Shown here: positions 8,294 through 16,009 of the stretch, in pieces
Layout of the letters: every line of letters starts with the position of its first letter
Position numbering within the stretch: the stretch's first letter is position 1
Notes under the pieces: model-generated
Told to the model about the DNA's origin: nothing
The model's input: the letters and a program-made list of their open reading frames with translations, nothing else
Database searches by the model: none
Made by a program: the position numbers and the translations under genes
NCBI GenBank assembly: GCA_013416795.1
Contig: RQSC01000619.1
Span: forward strand, 9,824-61,977
DNA: 52,154 bases
From: Prasinococcaceae sp. CCMP 1430
Taxonomy: Eukaryota; Plantae; Prasinodermophyta
Reading direction: 5' to 3'

Positions 8294-11200
8294 GCCGCCG
8301 TGAACGGCGCCGTGAACGGCGCAGATGGCGGCGACGGCGCCGACGACGGCGCTCTGGCGCGCATGCTCGCAGAGATCACGGACGGCGACGAGAGCGGCGT
8401 CAACGGCACCAACGGCGCCGACGGCGCCGACGGCGCTGGCGGCGCGGCGCTCGCGCGCCTGCTTGCGGAGATCACAGACGGCGAAGAGAGCGACGAAGAG
8501 CACGAGGACGCGGACGAGGACGCCGCGGACGCCGCGGACATCGCCGCGCAAGCGAAGAGCACCGCCGCTGCGGCCTCCGAAAAGTCGGCCTCGCCGGCGG
8601 AGAAGGAGACCGCGCGCTGGGCGGCGCGCGCGGCCGAGCTGTTCGCGCTGCCCATCAACGGCCTGAAGCCTCTGCTGCGCGACTACGGTCTCCAGCTGGG
8701 CGGCAAGAAGGCCGTGCTCGTGGAACGCCTCGTGCACAGGGAGAAGGAGATCGTGCACAAGGAGAGGGAGCGTGCCGCGGAGCTGGCGCTGGCCGAAGCT
8801 GAGGCGCTCAGTGCAAAGCTCACTGCGGAGATGGACAAGAGGACTGCGGAGGCGGGGACACGCGCGGCCGAGGCGAGCAGCCGCCGCGACGCCCTTCGGT
8901 TCGACATGCTGTACGCTGAACTCGAGTCGGAGCAGGCCAAGTGGAAGGAGGGCGAAGTCGCGCGGATACAACTCCAGGAGAAGGTGGACTCCCTGAATGC
9001 CGTGCTCGCGCAGGTGGAGGTCAGAGCGGCAACGGCGGAGGGAGAGCGTGACCTCGCGCAAAGTCAGCTCGTGCAGCTCCGCGCCGCGGCGGAGAAGGCG
9101 CAGGCGCGGATGACCGCCCAACTGGATGCGCAGCGCCGCGAGGGCGACGTCATGCGCCAGCGCGTCCACGAGCTCTCGGACCAAGTGGTACAGGCGCACG
9201 CTGAGGCCGAGAGGAGCCAGAGGCTGTTCTTGGAGATGCAGGCGAAGCTCGCGGGGGAACGGGCGACTGCGGCCGAGACGACCAAAAGCTACCAGGCGGA
9301 GCTGGCGTCGACAAGGGACCGGGCCGAACGTATGCGCGCCGAGGCGCAGCAGGCGCAGGCCCAAATGGCCGCCGAACTTGATGCTGCGCGCCGCGAGGGC
9401 GAGGCTGCGCGCCAGCGCGTGACCGAGCTCACTGAGGAGGTGGCACAGGCGCAGGCTGATCTTGCTGAGGCCGTGAAGAGGCGCGTTCTCGAGCTCACAG
9501 AAACGAGGGAAAAGGCGGAGGCTCACGCGGCGGAGGCTGACGAGGCCGAGGCTCACAAGCCGGAGGCCAACGAGGCCAATCATGGCGAGGCAAATGCTGG
9601 CGAGGAGGACGCTGGCGAGGAGAAGCTTAGCATTGCCGAGACTGTGAAGAGGCGCGTGCTCGGCCTCACACAGAGGCCGACGTCCGGGGGGTCGCTGCGC
9701 CGCAGCGGCGGTCGGTTCGGCGGGGCTGAGCCTCCTGCCCCGCCCCCTGGCCCGGCCTACCTGAGGCGCAAGGAACAAAAGGTTGAAGCTCAAAATGAGG
9801 AGGTTGACGCGCAGGAGGACGTAGAGGAGGTCGAGGCGCAGGAGGGCATAGAGAAGGTCGAGGCGCAGGAGGGCGGAGAAAAATCCGAGGCAGACACCGG
9901 AGACAGGGTGGAGGCAGAGACCGGAGACAGGGTCGAGGAGACCGGAGACAAGGTCGAGGCTCCGCCACCTGCCGAGGCGCCTGTCCATCCCCCTCAGCCG
10001 ACGTACCAGGCCGCGGGACCGCCGGCTCCCAAGCCGAAGAAGGTACCGGGCCACATCGCCCGCATGGAGGCTGCACGCGCAAAGCAAGCTGCACGCGCCA
10101 AGGGCCAGGGAGGACAGGTTGGCGCGCAGGTTGGGGCGAAGGCCGACGTGCCGCCGCCCGCCGCGGTGCCCCCGCCCGCCGCCGTACCCCCGCCCGCCGC
10201 GGTGCCGCCGCCCGCCGCCGCGCCCGTCCGCACCCCCGAGTTCCTGGCGAACCAGGCCGCTGCGCCGGGTGCTTCCAGGCCGAAGAAGGTGCCGGGCCAC
10301 ATCGCCCGCATGGAGGCCGCGCGCGCGAAGGAGGCTGCACGCGCCACGGCCCAGGGAGGACAGGTTGGCGCGCAGGGCGGGGCGAAGGCCGACGTGCCCT
10401 CGCCCTCCGCCGCGCCCGTCCGTATCCCCGAGTTCCTGGCGAACCAGGCCGCTGCGCCGGGTGCTTCCAGGCCGAAGAAGGTGCCGGGCCACATCGCCCG
10501 CATGGAGGCTGCGCGCGCCAAGGCCCAAGGAAAACAGGTTGGCGCCGAGGGCAGACAGACGGGCGAGGTGCAGGGCGGATACAACTCGCAGCCGCAGGTT
10601 GAGTCTGGGCGTGATGACATGCTTGCCAAGCACGCCGCCGAACTTGATGCTGTGCGCCGCAAGGGTGAGGCTGAACGCCAGCGCAGAGATGACATGCTTG
10701 CCAAGCACGCCGACGAACTTGATGCCCTGCGCCTCGAGCTCGAGGCCGCGCGCAAGCGCAGAGATGAAATGCTGGCGAAGCATGCCGCCGAACTCCATGC
10801 CTTGCGTCGCGAGCTCGAGGTTGCCCATCAGCGCAGAGATGAAATGGTCGCGAAACACGCCGCCGAACTTGATGCCGTGCGCCGCGAGGGCGAGGCTGAG
10901 CGGAAGCGCAAAGATGACATGCTTGCGGAAAAGGCCGCCGAGCTCGATGCCTTGCGCCGTGAGGGCGAGGCTGCGCGCAAGCGCGTGACTGAGCTCACGG
11001 AACAACTGGCCCAAGCGCAGGGTGGGCCTCAGCGCGACGAGTTCGACGCCTTGCGCCGTGAGGGCGAGGCCGCGCGCCAGCGCGTGACCGAGCTCACGGA
11101 GCAGCTGGCCCGGGCGCAGGCCGGGCCTGTGCGCGACGACGCGAGTAGTACGCATGACGACGGTAGCTTTTTTACGCATGGACAGACGGTCCAGTCGCGG

Positions 11201-11737
11201 GCCGAGGCTGCGTGGAGCCTGCAGCTCACGGAGGAGCTGCAGGCGAGGCTCCAGCGCTTGGCAGCGGTCGGGGCAGAAACGAGCAGCGACCTCACGGCCA
11301 AGCTCACGAAGGCGAAGGAAGAGGGCGACAAGTATCGCGCCTCGGAGTCGAGGATGGCAGCCGAGCTCGAGGAAGCGCGACAAGACGTGCGCAGGCGCAC
11401 GGCTGAGGCGACCCAGGCGCAGGCCGAGGCCGCCAACAACCAGAGGCTCGCCGATGAATTGCAGTCGAGGCTCTCGCGCTTGGCAGCGAATGGGGGCGAG
11501 GCCAATGGCGAGATCGACGGCGGCCTGGCGGCGAGGCTGGAGCACGCGAAGGAGCAGGGGGACATTGAGGCGCAGGCAAGAATGGCAGTCGAGCTCGAGT
11601 CCTTGCGCGAGGCTGTGCGCGCGCGCACGGCCGAGGCGGCCCACGCGCACGCTGCCGCCGTGAGGAGCCAGCAGATCGCCGAGGAGATGAAGTCGAGGCT
11701 CGATCGCGCGTCCGAGCGCCTCCACACGCTGAATTAG
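8294..11737 (+). CDS. SAP-domain, repeat-rich long coiled-coil protein; 5' end in gap
   Basis: Open frame from the gap edge to TAG 11735-11737. SAP-like ELFALPINGLKPLLRDYGLQLGGKKAVLVERL at about 8635-8735, followed by Glu/Ala/Arg coiled coil and internal repeats. Confidence 0.75.
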   Translation, partial: AAVNGAVNGADGGDGADDGALARMLAEITDGDESGVNGTNGADGADGAGGAALARLLAEITDGEESDEEHEDADEDAADAADIAAQAKSTAAAASEKSASPAEKETARWAARAAELFALPINGLKPLLRDYGLQLGGKKAVLVERLVHREKEIVHKERERAAELALAEAEALSAKLTAEMDKRTAEAGTRAAEASSRRDALRFDMLYAELESEQAKWKEGEVARIQLQEKVDSLNAVLAQVEVRAATAEGERDLAQSQLVQLRAAAEKAQARMTAQLDAQRREGDVMRQRVHELSDQVVQAHAEAERSQRLFLEMQAKLAGERATAAETTKSYQAELASTRDRAERMRAEAQQAQAQMAAELDAARREGEAARQRVTELTEEVAQAQADLAEAVKRRVLELTETREKAEAHAAEADEAEAHKPEANEANHGEANAGEEDAGEEKLSIAETVKRRVLGLTQRPTSGGSLRRSGGRFGGAEPPAPPPGPAYLRRKEQKVEAQNEEVDAQEDVEEVEAQEGIEKVEAQEGGEKSEADTGDRVEAETGDRVEETGDKVEAPPPAEAPVHPPQPTYQAAGPPAPKPKKVPGHIARMEAARAKQAARAKGQGGQVGAQVGAKADVPPPAAVPPPAAVPPPAAVPPPAAAPVRTPEFLANQAAAPGASRPKKVPGHIARMEAARAKEAARATAQGGQVGAQGGAKADVPSPSAAPVRIPEFLANQAAAPGASRPKKVPGHIARMEAARAKAQGKQVGAEGRQTGEVQGGYNSQPQVESGRDDMLAKHAAELDAVRRKGEAERQRRDDMLAKHADELDALRLELEAARKRRDEMLAKHAAELHALRRELEVAHQRRDEMVAKHAAELDAVRREGEAERKRKDDMLAEKAAELDALRREGEAARKRVTELTEQLAQAQGGPQRDEFDALRREGEAARQRVTELTEQLARAQAGPVRDDASSTHDDGSFFTHGQTVQSRAEAAWSLQLTEELQARLQRLAAVGAETSSDLTAKLTKAKEEGDKYRASESRMAAELEEARQDVRRRTAEATQAQAEAANNQRLADELQSRLSRLAANGGEANGEIDGGLAARLEHAKEQGDIEAQARMAVELESLREAVRARTAEAAHAHAAAVRSQQIAEEMKSRLDRASERLHTLN
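10034..10525 (+). repeat. Three coding repeat units PKKVPGHIARMEAARAK with nested 18-nt PPPAAV repeats
   Basis: Units start at 10034, 10280 and 10472. The spacings 246 and 192 differ by 54 nt, equal to three extra 18-nt PPPAAV units (about 10148-10220). Units 2 and 3 are near-identical in DNA. Confidence 0.9.
10610..10984 (+). repeat. Five tandem 75-nt (25-aa) coding repeats, consensus RDDMLAKHAAELDA(V/L)RREGEAxRxR
   Basis: Read directly from the translation; units start at 10610, 10685, 10760, 10835 and 10910. Confidence 0.9.
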
Positions 11738-12021
11738 TAGTAGGTGCGCGCGAGCGCGGGCGTGTCAGCTGGACGCCTCGCCCCCCGGCGCTCGCGCGCG
11801 CGTGCGTACCTGTTCGGTAACACGTTGGTTTTCGTCCGCCCGCCGGCCACGGCACGGGCGCACTCCCCCCGGCCACGGAGCGAGCGCCGCGCGCCCGCCA
11901 GCCCNNNNNNNNNNNNNNNNNNNNNNNNNNNNNNNNNNNNNNNNNNNNNNNNNNNNNNNNNNNNNNNNNNNNNNNNNNNNNNNNNNNNNNNNNNNNNNNN
12001 NNNNNNNNNNNNNNNNNNNNN

Positions 12022-15000
12022 GCGGGTGCAGCGGAGGGCACGGGACGCGCTGCGTGCTGAGGCGGCGCGCGGCGGCGCGGCGCGTGGCTGGAGGCGGTCG
12101 TTCGGTCGCGCGTGGCCCCAGGGGGGCGCCCGCAGGCCGTGCCGCTGCGGGCGGCGATGCTGCCACCGGCGGTGATGATGTGCTCGCTGACCTGCTCGCG
12201 CAGATCATCGGGGAGGAGGAGGCAGCCGCGACGGCCCCAGAGGCCGCCGGTGCCACCGATGAAGACAAGTTCACGGACGAAGATGATTTCCTGTCCGATG
12301 AGCTCACCGCGGAGGATCTGAGCGAGGCGAATGACTTCGACGCGCTCACGGCAGACCTGGACGCGCTGGTGGGGACCCCGACCCCCACCAACGAAACGAA
12401 ACCCTCAGTAAGCGAGGACGCCACGCGCTGGGCGGCGCGTGCGGCCGAGCTGAGCGCTCTGCCAGTCGACAAAGGGCTCAAGCCACTGCTGCGTGAGTAC
12501 GGTCTCAAGCTCGGAGGCAAAAAGGCGGTGCTCGTGGAACGTCTCGTTGAGAAGGAGAAGGAGCTCGCCGCCGAACAGGCGGTGGCCGACGCCAAGGCTG
12601 CGCGCGTGGGGGCGCGCGTGGAGGCGCTCGAGTCGCGCGCGCGCGGATGGGCGGACCGCGCGCTCGCGCGCAACCGCGAGTCCATCGAGCGCGGCTGGGA
12701 GACCGAGTCGTACAATCTGTCCATGGGCATCGAGCCCGGGCAGGACGCGCCGCCCGAGCAAGCCGCTGAGGACGCGGACGCCACCACTGGCGACTTCGAC
12801 GCGTTCGACCTTTCGCGCTTCGACATGGTTGAGGAGGACGCTGCGGCCGCCGAGGCTGAGCGCGAGCGCGCGGAGGCTGAGGCTGCGGCAGCCGCCGCCG
12901 CCGCCGAGGCCGAGGCCGAGCGCGAGCGCAAGGCCAACGAGCCCAAGTACGATGCCGCCAAATTCAAGGCGACGGGCCTCGACATGGCAGGCATGGGCAT
13001 CGGATATGAGATGGGGCCCACCGACATGGCGAGCGTGGACCTGCACTCGGGGCAGGCGTACGCGGCGCTCGAGCTGCTGCAGGCGGAGGAGGATGAGCGC
13101 GCTCGTAAGGGCCGCCGCCGCCCCGAAGAGGAGTCGCTCGGCGAGGAGATGCGGCGGCGGCTGAATGTGGACGTGGAGGAGATGCTGCACGCGCTGGTGC
13201 TGCTCGAGGACTCGGCTTCGCTCGACGCGGAGCAGGCGCTGCAGGCCCTCAAAGGCGCGCTCGCACAAGCGCACGAGGGTGTGTCGGGCACGCACTACCG
13301 TCGCATGCTCCGTCAGGTTGGGCGTGATCGTCGCAAGGTCAACGCCCAGGTGGACATCGACCTCGATGGCCAGACCATCCAGATCCTCTCGCAGCGCATG
13401 GGTCGGCGCGGCGAAATCCTCGAGCAGCGCAACGACACGCCCATGGCCCTCGATGCCTACCGCCGCGGCTTCCTCAACGCGCTGCGCGCGCAGGTGAGCC
13501 GCCAGCAGCAGCGCGCGGCGAGATTCCTCGCCGAGGACTTGGAGGGGACCGTGGTTGAGGCCGAGGTGCGCCACGTGTCGGAGTTCACGGGCGAGGTGGA
13601 GCTCGAGCTCAGGATGTCGCGCTCGGAGCGCTCCAAGCTGCCCGGGCGCATGCGCACCATCGTGCCTCGCGCACAGCAGGTCAAAGGTGAGCACTACCGC
13701 GTGGGCGAGGTGCTTTCCGTTGTTGTGCAGTCCTTTGCAGAGGCGGAGCGCCCGCGGCGAGGAGAGGACAACACCGAGCGCTACGACTTTACCTCAGACC
13801 AGGAGCTCAACATCGATACCGAGACAGGCGCACCGCTCTCTACGCTACGCCCGGGCGAGGGCGACAAGCTGGTCTCGCGCGCAGCTGCCACTCTGACGTG
13901 CTCGCGCCGCGCGCCCGAGCTCGTGCGGGGCCTCGTCGAGCGCGTGGTTCCCGAGGTGACGGGCGAGGACAGCCTTCTACGGATCATGGGCGTGTCGCGC
14001 GAGCCTGGAAAGTTCACCAAGGTGGCCATCGCGGCGGGCACGCCTGGCGCCAGCTCCGAGTCGGCCGTGCGCGTCGCCGTGGGTGTCGATGGCATTAATT
14101 CACGGCGCCTCTCAGAGCTCCTCGGCGGCGAACAGGTCATCTTCGTGGAGTATGATGAGGATCCGCAACGATACCTGCGCAACGCGATGGACAGGTACTG
14201 GCGCGACGACGAACGCTCCGCCTTGTCTGCTGTGCTGGTGTACACCGACGACCACGGCGATGGTTGGGGCTATGTTGCTGCCAAGCCTGGCATGGGAGCC
14301 GCCATGGTGGGCTCAGGCGCCTGCAACGTGCGCACGGCGTCGGACCTCACCGGCCTCAAGCTGAGCGTCGTTGAAGAGGATGAGTTCGAAGAGATCATGA
14401 AGCGGCGCGACGAGCGCGAGGCGCGCCGCATGAGTGCCGGCTGGCGCGTGCACTCCCGCGGACGCTTCGAAGGCGAAGCCGCGGCTGCGGGCACGGACAG
14501 CGCTAGCAGCATGCTCGAGGTTGAGGGCGTGCCCAGGGTGGATGACGCCGACATGTATGCCATGGGCAAGGACGAAGCCACCGTGGGCCAGTATGATTTG
14601 GACTCGCTGCTCGACGGTTTCGGCACCCTCAACGGCCGTGGCCGTGGCCGCGGCGCGGGCGAGGCTGCCTCTTCCGCGTCCGCACAGTCGAGTCGCCCCT
14701 CGCCGTCCGATCGCGACAGCAGCCGTGGGGGAGCGGGCGCCGGCAGTTGGCGGCAGACGTACGCGCCGCCGTCCTCGGGCTTTGTCAGCAGCGGCGGCGG
14801 TGGCGAGAACGAGGAGGAAGATACCGACGGTGGCTTCTTGGACGGCGATTTCGACCTCGATGAGCTGCTGGGCTCCCTCGACGGCGATGCCACTCCTGCC
14901 ACGACTGGCGGCGGATTCGACGACGAGGAGGATGGAGTCGCCAGTGCGACGGCGGGCGCAGGGTGGGCGGGTGACACCGGTGATGGCGACGAGGAAGGCT

Positions 15001-15284
15001 TTGACCTCGACGAGGTTCTTGGCGCGGCGGTGGAAGGTGTGGGTGCAGGTGCCTCGGCGGAGGGCGGAGGCTTCTACCAGACCGCAAGCAGTGGCAGCGG
15101 CGGCTGGGCTGCCAACGAGGACGACGGCTGGGCCGATGGCGAGGATGATCTGTGGGCAGAGGAGGACGATGCCGAGTCTGAGGAAGCCCCCACGGATGCC
15201 AGTCCGGCCAAGGACGAGGCCACGAGCGACGACGCCCCGCAGGCGGGCGAGGACGATCTGGGCGTGGATGGCGTGTCGTGGTGA
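12022..15284 (+). CDS. nusA: SAP domain + bacterial-type NusA (NTD-S1-KH1-KH2) protein with acidic Gly-rich tail; probably organelle-targeted; start in gap
   Basis: IVPRAQQVKGEHYRVGEVL (S1), SRRAPELVRGLVERVVPEV, SREPGKFTKVAI, AVGVDGINSRRLSELLGGEQVIFVEYDEDPQRYLRNAM (KH1) and AMVGSGACNVRTASDLTGLKLSV (KH2) align in order with NusA. SAP motif at about 12445-12550. An Arg/Ala-rich segment right after the gap resembles a transit peptide. Confidence 0.85.
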
Positions 15285-16009
15285 GCGCCTGCGTAAACGA
15301 AAGCTACCTACGTTGATCGCCCCTCGCACACGCGGACGCGCGCGCCGAGGCAGGGGCGCAGCGCAATCGCCGCTGGCCGCGCGCGGCCCGCGCCAGCCCT
15401 CCATGCCGCGCGTGGCCGTGCCTCGCCTCGCGTGCGCTGTTCCGACGCCTGCAGCCTCCGTCTGTTTCTCGCTCTTCAGTTGTCTCTCATTGCCGCGCAT
15501 GAGCCATCTTCGGTGAAATGGATGTGCGTCGAGGGGCAGAGCTCGTCACCCACAACCACACATAAAAAAAACTGGTCTGGTCATTGCTCGCCCTCTGTTG
15601 ACGGCTCCGGCTGGCCCACAGCACGGGCTGTCTCCTCTAGAGCCTGTACACATGTGTCCGCGTTCGCACTTGCGGGGTGCTCGGCTGTTGGCCGACGCCT
15701 CCGAGGCGCGGGGCGGGCGCTTCGAAAGATGCCAACCTGCCTCGGGGCGCATCGTCGGGCGCCTGAAGACAGATGGCGGCGAAGTGATTTCCCCCGCGAA
15801 ATTTCCGCGGCGCGACGCATCGGCATCGGAGGGCGCGCGATCGGGCCGGCGGGCGGGAGGTGCGCCACTGCGCGAGCGAGCGTGGGGGCACAGGGGGGTG
15901 AGCGTCCCCGCGCGTCCGCGCGAGCGAGGCACCGACGCACGCCCGGGTTCCTACGGTCCCGCTGGGCGGAGGAGGGGCACGCCCCGGCGCAGGCGCCGCG
16001 CATTGAGTT

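Follow-up and report, generated by a model that had tools for sequence, protein, structure and literature searches.

We describe a gene in a 52,154-nucleotide stretch of DNA from the alga Prasinococcaceae sp. CCMP 1430 (contig RQSC01000619.1, positions 9,824 to 61,977; this whole stretch is referred to as the window, and positions are counted from its first letter). As judged from sequence and modelled fold, the gene encodes a genuine, very divergent homologue of the bacterial transcription factor NusA that is fused, in a eukaryotic nuclear gene, to a SAP motif. The protein, here called SAP-NusA, is probably a nuclear-encoded plastid transcription factor equipped with a DNA tether of its own, which is the most likely of the roles considered below. 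It belongs to a conserved family present in three algal lineages and is not unique to the present genome. The elongation and termination factors of the bacterial-type polymerase of the chloroplast are poorly known, and among them later work has characterised only NusG (PMC9262611). No report of a plastid or eukaryotic NusA was found among open-access papers, and an initial annotation of this DNA, made from its letters alone, knew of no characterised eukaryotic NusA; databases do carry automatically assigned labels for the family.

The fusion gene and its transcript

The gene occupies a single open frame on the + strand (11802-15284), broken solely by a run of N at 11905-12021. Downstream of this gap, the frame is free of stops for 1086 amino acids (12024-15281, + strand) and ends at a stop codon at 15282-15284. 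The first visible methionine occurs only at residue ~230, and the start codon is therefore placed inside the gap. The features of the gene, numbered by the residues visible after the gap, are as follows.

11905-12021, no strand: assembly gap of 117 N, covering the start codon and the 5' end of the gene
12024-12179, + strand: basic Arg/Ala/Gly-rich leader, transit-peptide-like (visible residues 1-52; 10 K+R versus 3 D+E; isoelectric point (pI) 11.8)
12180-12413, + strand: acidic linker with the motif LLAxIxGEEE (22 D+E versus 2 K+R); the motif is also found in the orthologue P0001
12414-12566, + strand: SAP module (Pfam core at residues 152-176, 12477-12551), the best-conserved part of the algal family
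12567-13112, + strand: Ala/Glu-rich linker, with blocks conserved only within the Prasinoderma-type pair
13113-13541, + strand: NusA N-terminal domain (NTD), reduced; alpha1, alpha2, alpha4 and a beta sheet kept, head missing
13542-13742, + strand: S1-like beta barrel, with a continuous family-profile alignment to 1hh2 and 1k0r and a predicted local distance difference test score (pLDDT) mostly of 94-97 in the model
13743-13886, + strand: lineage-specific insert between S1 and KH1 (pLDDT <50 at core residues 223-233)
13887-14150, + strand: KH1, NusA-type, with the GxxG loop GVDG at 14082-14093 (KH_5 and PDB alignments)
14151-14384, + strand: KH2, NusA-type, with the GxxG loop GSGA at 14310-14321 (TIGR01953 reaches residue 786)
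14385-15284, + strand: acidic Gly/Asp/Glu-rich tail and stop codon (299 residues, 788-1086; 72 D+E versus 19 K+R; pI 4.05)

RNA contigs place the SAP motif and the NusA core on the same message. Positions 12095-15268 are matched collinearly by a 3183-nucleotide contig, assembled from a small transcriptome-like run of this organism, in which a skipped 96-nucleotide repeat (12846-12941) is the only break and leaves the contig numbering in register. Contigs labelled as marine metatranscriptome match 12036-12764 and 12942-15305 with ~99% identity, and the RNA contigs of the upstream neighbouring gene stop at 11746-11754. Because RNA contigs run collinearly across SAP and NusA, the fusion is read as one unspliced transcript, separate from that of its neighbour. 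The split transcript that the initial annotation had listed as an objection to the fusion was not found.

Homology to NusA

Sequence, profile and fold comparisons agree in assigning the core of the protein to NusA. The initial annotation would have abandoned this assignment if hidden Markov model searches had failed to support it; support was found with the NCBIfam model TIGR01953, in phmmer searches of PDB, with a profile of the algal family and in a fold match. TIGR01953 matches residues 622-786 (model positions 189-339) with an E-value (E) of 2e-21, and Pfam KH_5, at 27.1 bits versus a cut-off of 27, is matched by all 10 of the 10 family members. Used as a single sequence against PDB, the protein retrieves the NusA of Mycobacterium tuberculosis, Escherichia coli and Thermotoga maritima at E 9e-12 to 5e-10, with a second, weak stretch of alignment across the NTD and S1. 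When a profile of 10 family sequences was used, the match reached E 5.6e-36 and covered residues 38-337 of 1k0r, that is, the NTD, S1, KH1 and KH2, and residues 124-333 of T. maritima NusA (1hh2) were aligned at E 8e-35. NusA alone was returned when this full-length family profile was searched against PDB. PF26594 is present as a precomputed match on the orthologue records.

The fold of the core was modelled with AlphaFold2 (AF2). A first model, made from a 2-sequence alignment, gave a pLDDT of 41 and was superseded by one made from a 54-sequence alignment, in which residues 364-795 reach a pLDDT of 85.7 and a predicted template-modelling score (pTM) of 0.78. In fold searches, this model aligned with full-length NusA chains (~430 columns, E 6e-22) and with NusA clusters of the Atlas (template-modelling (TM) score 0.67); only bacterial NusA clusters were matched in the Atlas searches.

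Anatomy of the core

A full NusA core had been claimed for this protein, and the claim stands as far as the order NTD-S1-KH1-KH2 is concerned. It needs amendment for the first of these domains, which is reduced: the head segment of the NTD is missing from both the alignment and the AF2 model, and Pfam NusA_N is unmatched. What remains of the NTD can be related to its bacterial counterpart by comparing an algal-only with a bacterial-only profile in hhalign, which gave a probability of 82% and E 1e-5 over 57 columns comprising alpha1, alpha2 and the V-x-I-D hairpin. Two arginines, R481 (13464-13466) and R488 (13485-13487), sit in the alpha4-like helix. R481 is invariant in the algal members and aligns with the arginine of the bacterial FGRIAAQ motif, a position held by Arg in 43 of 44 bacterial rows. 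R488 lies seven residues further on, at a position that is Lys/Arg in bacteria, an alignment that for the Ostreococcus-type sequences hinges on gap placement. Equated from their spacing, the FGR arginine and the lysine that follows it would be R104 and K111 of E. coli NusA, the two alpha4 residues that are essential in that protein (PMC5842316).

For the S1 barrel, single-sequence evidence is weak (Pfam S1 is matched by 1 of 10 family members, E 0.026). The insert that follows it, between S1 and KH1, has no counterpart in bacteria or in the Mamiellophyceae-type proteins.

The two KH domains carry altered GxxG loops, as the initial annotation had observed. In a comparison with ~200 bacterial NusA sequences, GVDG and GSGA were confirmed to lack the basic residues usual in bacteria, where the KH1 loop contains a basic residue in 161 of 202 sequences and an acidic one in 8 of 202, and the KH2 loop a basic residue in 189 of 199. 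The third position of the KH1 loop is Asp in nearly all algal members. The loss of basic residues from both loops, coupled with the conserved KH1 aspartate, suggests that contact with RNA is weaker or altered.

The C-terminal tail is acidic and devoid of AR1/AR2, as first described, and at 299 residues is slightly longer than the ~250 originally given. Scans of the window protein with TIGR01954 and HHH_5 for AR1/AR2 returned no match, and the tail is of low complexity. Short acidic-aromatic motifs are scattered along it (FDLDELLGSL, FDLDEVLGA, GW and ...GVSW). Acidic tails are found in all three lineages of the family, and variants of the motifs, such as DEALLAQLG, LDELLGSL and FWGD, are met in each.

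The SAP motif and the leader

The N-terminal SAP motif of the initial annotation is borne out by several lines of evidence. Pfam SAP (PF02037) scores 23.7 bits in the whole protein, slightly below its cut-off of 23.9, and 29.4 bits when the module is scanned by itself; the modules of 9 of 9 family members match, and a profile of the module matches the SAP domains of Ku70 and Tho1 in PDB. Across the algal alignment the invariant positions are W136, R139, L143, L146, V148, G151-L155, R157, Y159, L161-L163, G165, K167, L170 and R173. The motif is of the eukaryotic type and, from its family membership, is predicted to bind double-stranded DNA.

Ahead of the SAP module, the Arg/Ala leader reported earlier was confirmed by its composition (residues 1-52, pI 11.8). 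In complete orthologues the leaders are Met-initiated, rich in Ala, Arg and Ser, basic and acid-free, and extend for ~35-60 residues ahead of SAP. In P0001, the methionine lies ~35 residues upstream of the LLAxIxGEEE motif that it has in common with the window protein.

A conserved algal family

A complete orthologue, P0001, is 59% identical and 1099 residues long, and is encoded, methionine included, by a complete open reading frame (ORF) on a 3548-nucleotide mRNA-like contig (L001) of a sister species. An exhaustive profile search of 1.84 billion representatives returned only two close matches, both fragments from the same or the sister species, with the next match at E 1e-17. Among the weaker matches, P0009 and P0011 have a SAP motif ahead of a NusA core. 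The cluster of P0009 contains Ostreococcus mediterraneus UniRef100_A0A6T5Y324, labelled 'S1 motif domain-containing protein', and JGI entries labelled 'transcription antitermination factor NusA-like protein'; its sister cluster contains the O. tauri protein XP_003079544.2 / CEF98129.1, labelled 'Ribosomal protein S1, RNA-binding domain' and encoded on a record of ~835 kb. The O. tauri gene models at this locus disagree, P0223, P0224 and P0225 being 186, 709 and 851 residues long, and are labelled 'unnamed product', 'Ribosomal protein S1, RNA-binding domain' and 'hypothetical protein', none of them NusA. An alignment of 10 sequences revealed a common order of leader, SAP, NTD, S1, KH1, KH2 and acidic tail, to which the Prasinoderma-type proteins add extra inserts.

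Metagenomes were scanned with the pattern GLKPL[CL]R[GED]Y, which lies in the SAP module, and 25 loci were obtained. Complete SAP-NusA ORFs on Mamiellophyceae-like contigs with a G+C content of 0.59-0.66 account for 21 of them, and 2 are cut by contig ends. The remaining 2 (L105:820-2741 and L106:3659-5981) represent a third, more divergent lineage. In both, an intron splits SAP at the same codon, after G-T-K, and the NusA core is found in the next exon. Their KH1 loops are acidic (GEDM and GDNY), and their KH2 loop is GKGG. The L105 intron seems to begin with GC, not GT. A word-index protein search with the family alignment added no further lineage. The distribution across algae that the initial annotation had proposed to survey takes in, as found here, Prasinoderma-type algae, the Ostreococcus type and other Mamiellophyceae, and a third, intron-bearing lineage, all of which carry the fusion.

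Phylogenetic position

The labelled bacterial NusA sequences used for comparison came from the 80 loci nearest a Lachnospiraceae query, a sample that is mostly Bacillota, with 2 Melainabacteria, and that is devoid of photosynthetic cyanobacteria and of labelled alpha- and gamma-proteobacteria. In the maximum-likelihood trees, a branch supported at 81-91 in the Shimodaira-Hasegawa-like approximate likelihood ratio test (SH-aLRT) has all algal rows on the same side. When each algal clade was placed singly, it went to the same region of the tree; this common placement, together with the shared fusion, points to a single origin followed by fast divergence. Near the algal clade stands P0122, an E. 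coli/Xanthomonas-like NusA; P0190 and P0191 are sequences that we take to be alphaproteobacterial. Since the joins were flagged as involving long branches, no donor is read from the trees. The comparison with other NusA sequences that the initial annotation had called for yielded a grouping of the algal rows beside proteobacterial-type NusA, with its cyanobacterial side limited to the 2 Melainabacteria.

Comparison with known systems

SAP-NusA has in common with bacterial NusA (E. coli, M. tuberculosis and T. maritima; 6flq, 1k0r and 1hh2) the order NTD-S1-KH1-KH2, the helices alpha1, alpha2 and alpha4, and the FGR arginine. Unlike its bacterial counterparts, the algal protein is encoded in the nucleus, is preceded by a leader and a SAP motif, and is missing the NTD head; in contrast to them it also has non-basic GxxG loops with a KH1 aspartate, and ends, without AR1/AR2, in a disordered-looking acidic tail of 299 residues. 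By these comparisons SAP-NusA descends from bacterial NusA yet fails the curated equivalog threshold, and is a variant NusA, not an ordinary member. Archaeal NusA (2cxc, 9fjl) resembles it in its tandem NusA-type KH domains but has neither an NTD nor an S1 domain, and bacterial NusA is by far the better-scoring match for SAP-NusA.

Two proteins of plastid transcription offer partial parallels. The first, pTAC13/AtNusG, is a bacterial elongation factor that is encoded, as SAP-NusA is, by a nuclear gene, and it serves the plastid-encoded polymerase (PMC9262611; PMC7593976); unlike SAP-NusA, it belongs to the NGN-KOW family, is widespread in plants and has been localised experimentally. The second, pTAC3/PAP1 of the land-plant plastid polymerase complex, had been put forward in the initial annotation as a SAP-motif protein of plastid transcription. 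PAP1 is built of pentatricopeptide repeats (PPR) and embraces the polymerase clamp (PMC11561172). In contrast to SAP-NusA, it has no NusA part, and a search of the complete set of PDB chains with a profile of the algal SAP module (E up to 10) matched no PAP1 chain. The parallel with pTAC3 therefore holds as an analogy only, with no kinship in sequence found in PDB.

A proposed model for SAP-NusA in plastid transcription

The anatomy of the protein suggests that this NusA may supply its DNA tether itself. In a cryo-electron microscopy structure of NusA on the paused E. coli polymerase, the flap-tip helix inserts into a pocket formed by alpha1, alpha2 and alpha4 of the NTD; the NTD head (alpha3, beta3 and beta4) binds the C-terminal domain (CTD) of the alpha2 subunit, and AR2 binds the alpha1-CTD, thereby relieving the auto-inhibition of KH1 (PMC5842316). 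Given that alpha1, alpha2 and alpha4 are kept and that the head and AR1/AR2 are absent, the algal protein appears to have retained the body that docks on the flap tip and to have lost both contacts to the alpha-CTDs.

We propose that SAP-NusA would be imported into the chloroplast, where the body of its NTD (alpha1, alpha2, alpha4 and the FGR arginine) would dock on the beta flap tip of the plastid-encoded, bacterial-type RNA polymerase, beside the RNA exit channel. The S1 and KH domains would then line the path of the nascent RNA, with binding that may be weaker or different now that basic residues are gone from the two GxxG loops. In place of the alpha-CTD contacts made by the NTD head and AR2 in E. 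coli, which are gone, the SAP motif could tether the protein to the nucleoid or to upstream DNA, and the short motifs of the acidic tail could recruit partners or exert auto-inhibition. A green alga is expected to have no bacterial-type polymerase other than the plastid-encoded one. Prasinophyte plastid genomes have rpoA, rpoC1 and rpoC2 in common (PMC4194372), and the wide retention of a nuclear-encoded NusG for the plastid polymerase provides a precedent (PMC7593976; PMC9262611).

A broader version of this model is conceivable, and we advance it tentatively. SAP-NusA might be the first eukaryotic NusA, an ancient elongation/termination factor of the plastid-encoded polymerase of the green lineage, in which the SAP tether and the motif-bearing acidic tail replaced both alpha-CTD contacts; it would survive in Prasinoderma-type algae, Mamiellophyceae and the third lineage, and would have been lost where a PAP-rich complex evolved.

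If a plastid role is correct, a second core bacterial elongation factor outlived endosymbiosis in some algae, and the family represents a natural experiment in which the alpha-CTD contacts of NusA were swapped for a built-in DNA-binding motif. As a trait common to deep green-algal lineages, SAP-NusA may help to trace how the plastid transcription machinery was rebuilt. Ostreococcus tauri is genetically tractable, and the proposed role could be tested there.

Evidence against the model and alternative roles

Several observations weigh against this assignment to plastid transcription. The equivalog cut-off of TIGR01953 is 253.4 bits, while the window protein scores 76.4 and its Ostreococcus orthologue 143.2; bacterial NusA sequences score 274-421. 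The algal stem branches measure 2-3 substitutions per site, and with scores this far below the cut-off a change of function is plausible. The NTD, which is the domain that binds the polymerase, is the least conserved part: Pfam NusA_N matches 0 algal members, and the hhalign probability is only 82% over 57 columns. The alignment behind the AF2 model is mostly bacterial NusA, so a NusA-like fold is partly built in. In the trees the algal clade adjoins proteobacterial-type NusA and not Melainabacteria, and no positive cyanobacterial sign is seen in a sample devoid of photosynthetic cyanobacteria. The true N-terminus falls in the assembly gap, and an Arg/Ala/Ser-rich leader suits a mitochondrial presequence equally well. 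Finally, members of the family were recovered from a small number of picoplanktonic green lineages only, and none from well-studied plants or Chlamydomonas.

Among the alternatives, the one that survives best keeps the protein in the plastid and takes it off the polymerase: an S1/KH module for handling RNA would be anchored by SAP to the nucleoid and would contribute there to the maturation of rRNA or mRNA, to RNA chaperoning, to repair or to the handling of R-loops. The extreme divergence and the score under the equivalog cut-off are in its favour, as are the loss of the NTD head, the failure to detect NusA_N and the altered GxxG loops, and chloroplast 3' ends arise mostly from processing, not from termination (PMC3630183). 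We nevertheless consider it unlikely, given that every algal member retains the FGR arginine and the NTD helices of the flap-tip pocket, which pausing in bacteria requires, and that the order NTD-S1-KH1-KH2 is intact in three lineages.

Less probable still is a mitochondrial or dual-targeted protein, left over from alpha-proteobacterial transcription machinery and put to new use as an RNA chaperone or nucleoid protein. This would suit an Arg/Ala-rich leader that has no feature specific to plastid import, and the position of the algal clades, alone or together, next to proteobacterial-type NusA; the tree, however, joins long branches, lacks photosynthetic cyanobacteria and says little on origin. 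Green-algal mitochondria use a phage-type RNA polymerase, and a docking partner for NusA would therefore be missing there.

The SAP motif itself is typical of nuclear proteins, with Ku70 and Tho1 as its best PDB matches, and long acidic low-complexity tails are common in such proteins; both would fit a nuclear or cytosolic SAP-KH protein of NusA descent, now acting on nuclear chromatin or RNA. This role is very unlikely: all complete orthologues open with a basic, acid-free leader of 35-60 residues, and we know of no nuclear partner for a complete bacterial-type NusA core.

An artefact, either bacterial contamination or a chimera of a eukaryotic SAP exon with a bacterial nusA, could be suspected from the assembly gap directly upstream but has a negligible probability, as independent RNA contigs span SAP and NusA, the fusion recurs on the chromosome-scale O. 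tauri record and on dozens of independent contigs from metagenomes, of which two contain spliceosomal-type introns, the G+C content of ~69% is that of the window, and no bacterial protein among the 1.84 billion representatives is closer than E 1e-17.

The gap, the upstream neighbour and other NusA-like proteins

The window is evenly G+C-rich (~64-75%), and the SAP-NusA gene, at ~69%, is like the window overall. Contigs of the DNA-like run X14 extend 418 nucleotides beyond 11904 and 66 nucleotides ahead of 12022, and the true missing stretch is therefore probably longer than the 117 nucleotides of the gap. These X14 contigs reach into 11905-12021, and public data could thus close it.

The upstream neighbour (8294-11737, + strand) encodes a long Ala/Glu-rich coiled-coil protein with internal repeats and has a separate transcript. 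The LLAxIxGEEE motif is present in it twice, and it contains a second copy of the SAP module:

8603-8752, + strand: paralogous SAP module in the upstream neighbour (75% amino acid identity, E 4e-19; ~81% nucleotide identity, 123 of 150 bases)

From the neighbouring SAP copy and the LLAxIxGEEE-like motif, it looks as though the N-terminal module had been duplicated locally or shuffled between the two tandem genes.

Two further observations concern proteins met in the NusA searches. The best 'bacterial' match, P0004, is a fragment of NusA of the actinobacterial type in which ~135 residues are internally duplicated, and is probably an artefact of metagenome assembly. Four proteins of 650-820 residues, taken as bacterial (P0013, P0097, P0110 and P0133), have an N-terminal membrane-like segment and a large domain, together with two consecutive NusA-like KH pairs.

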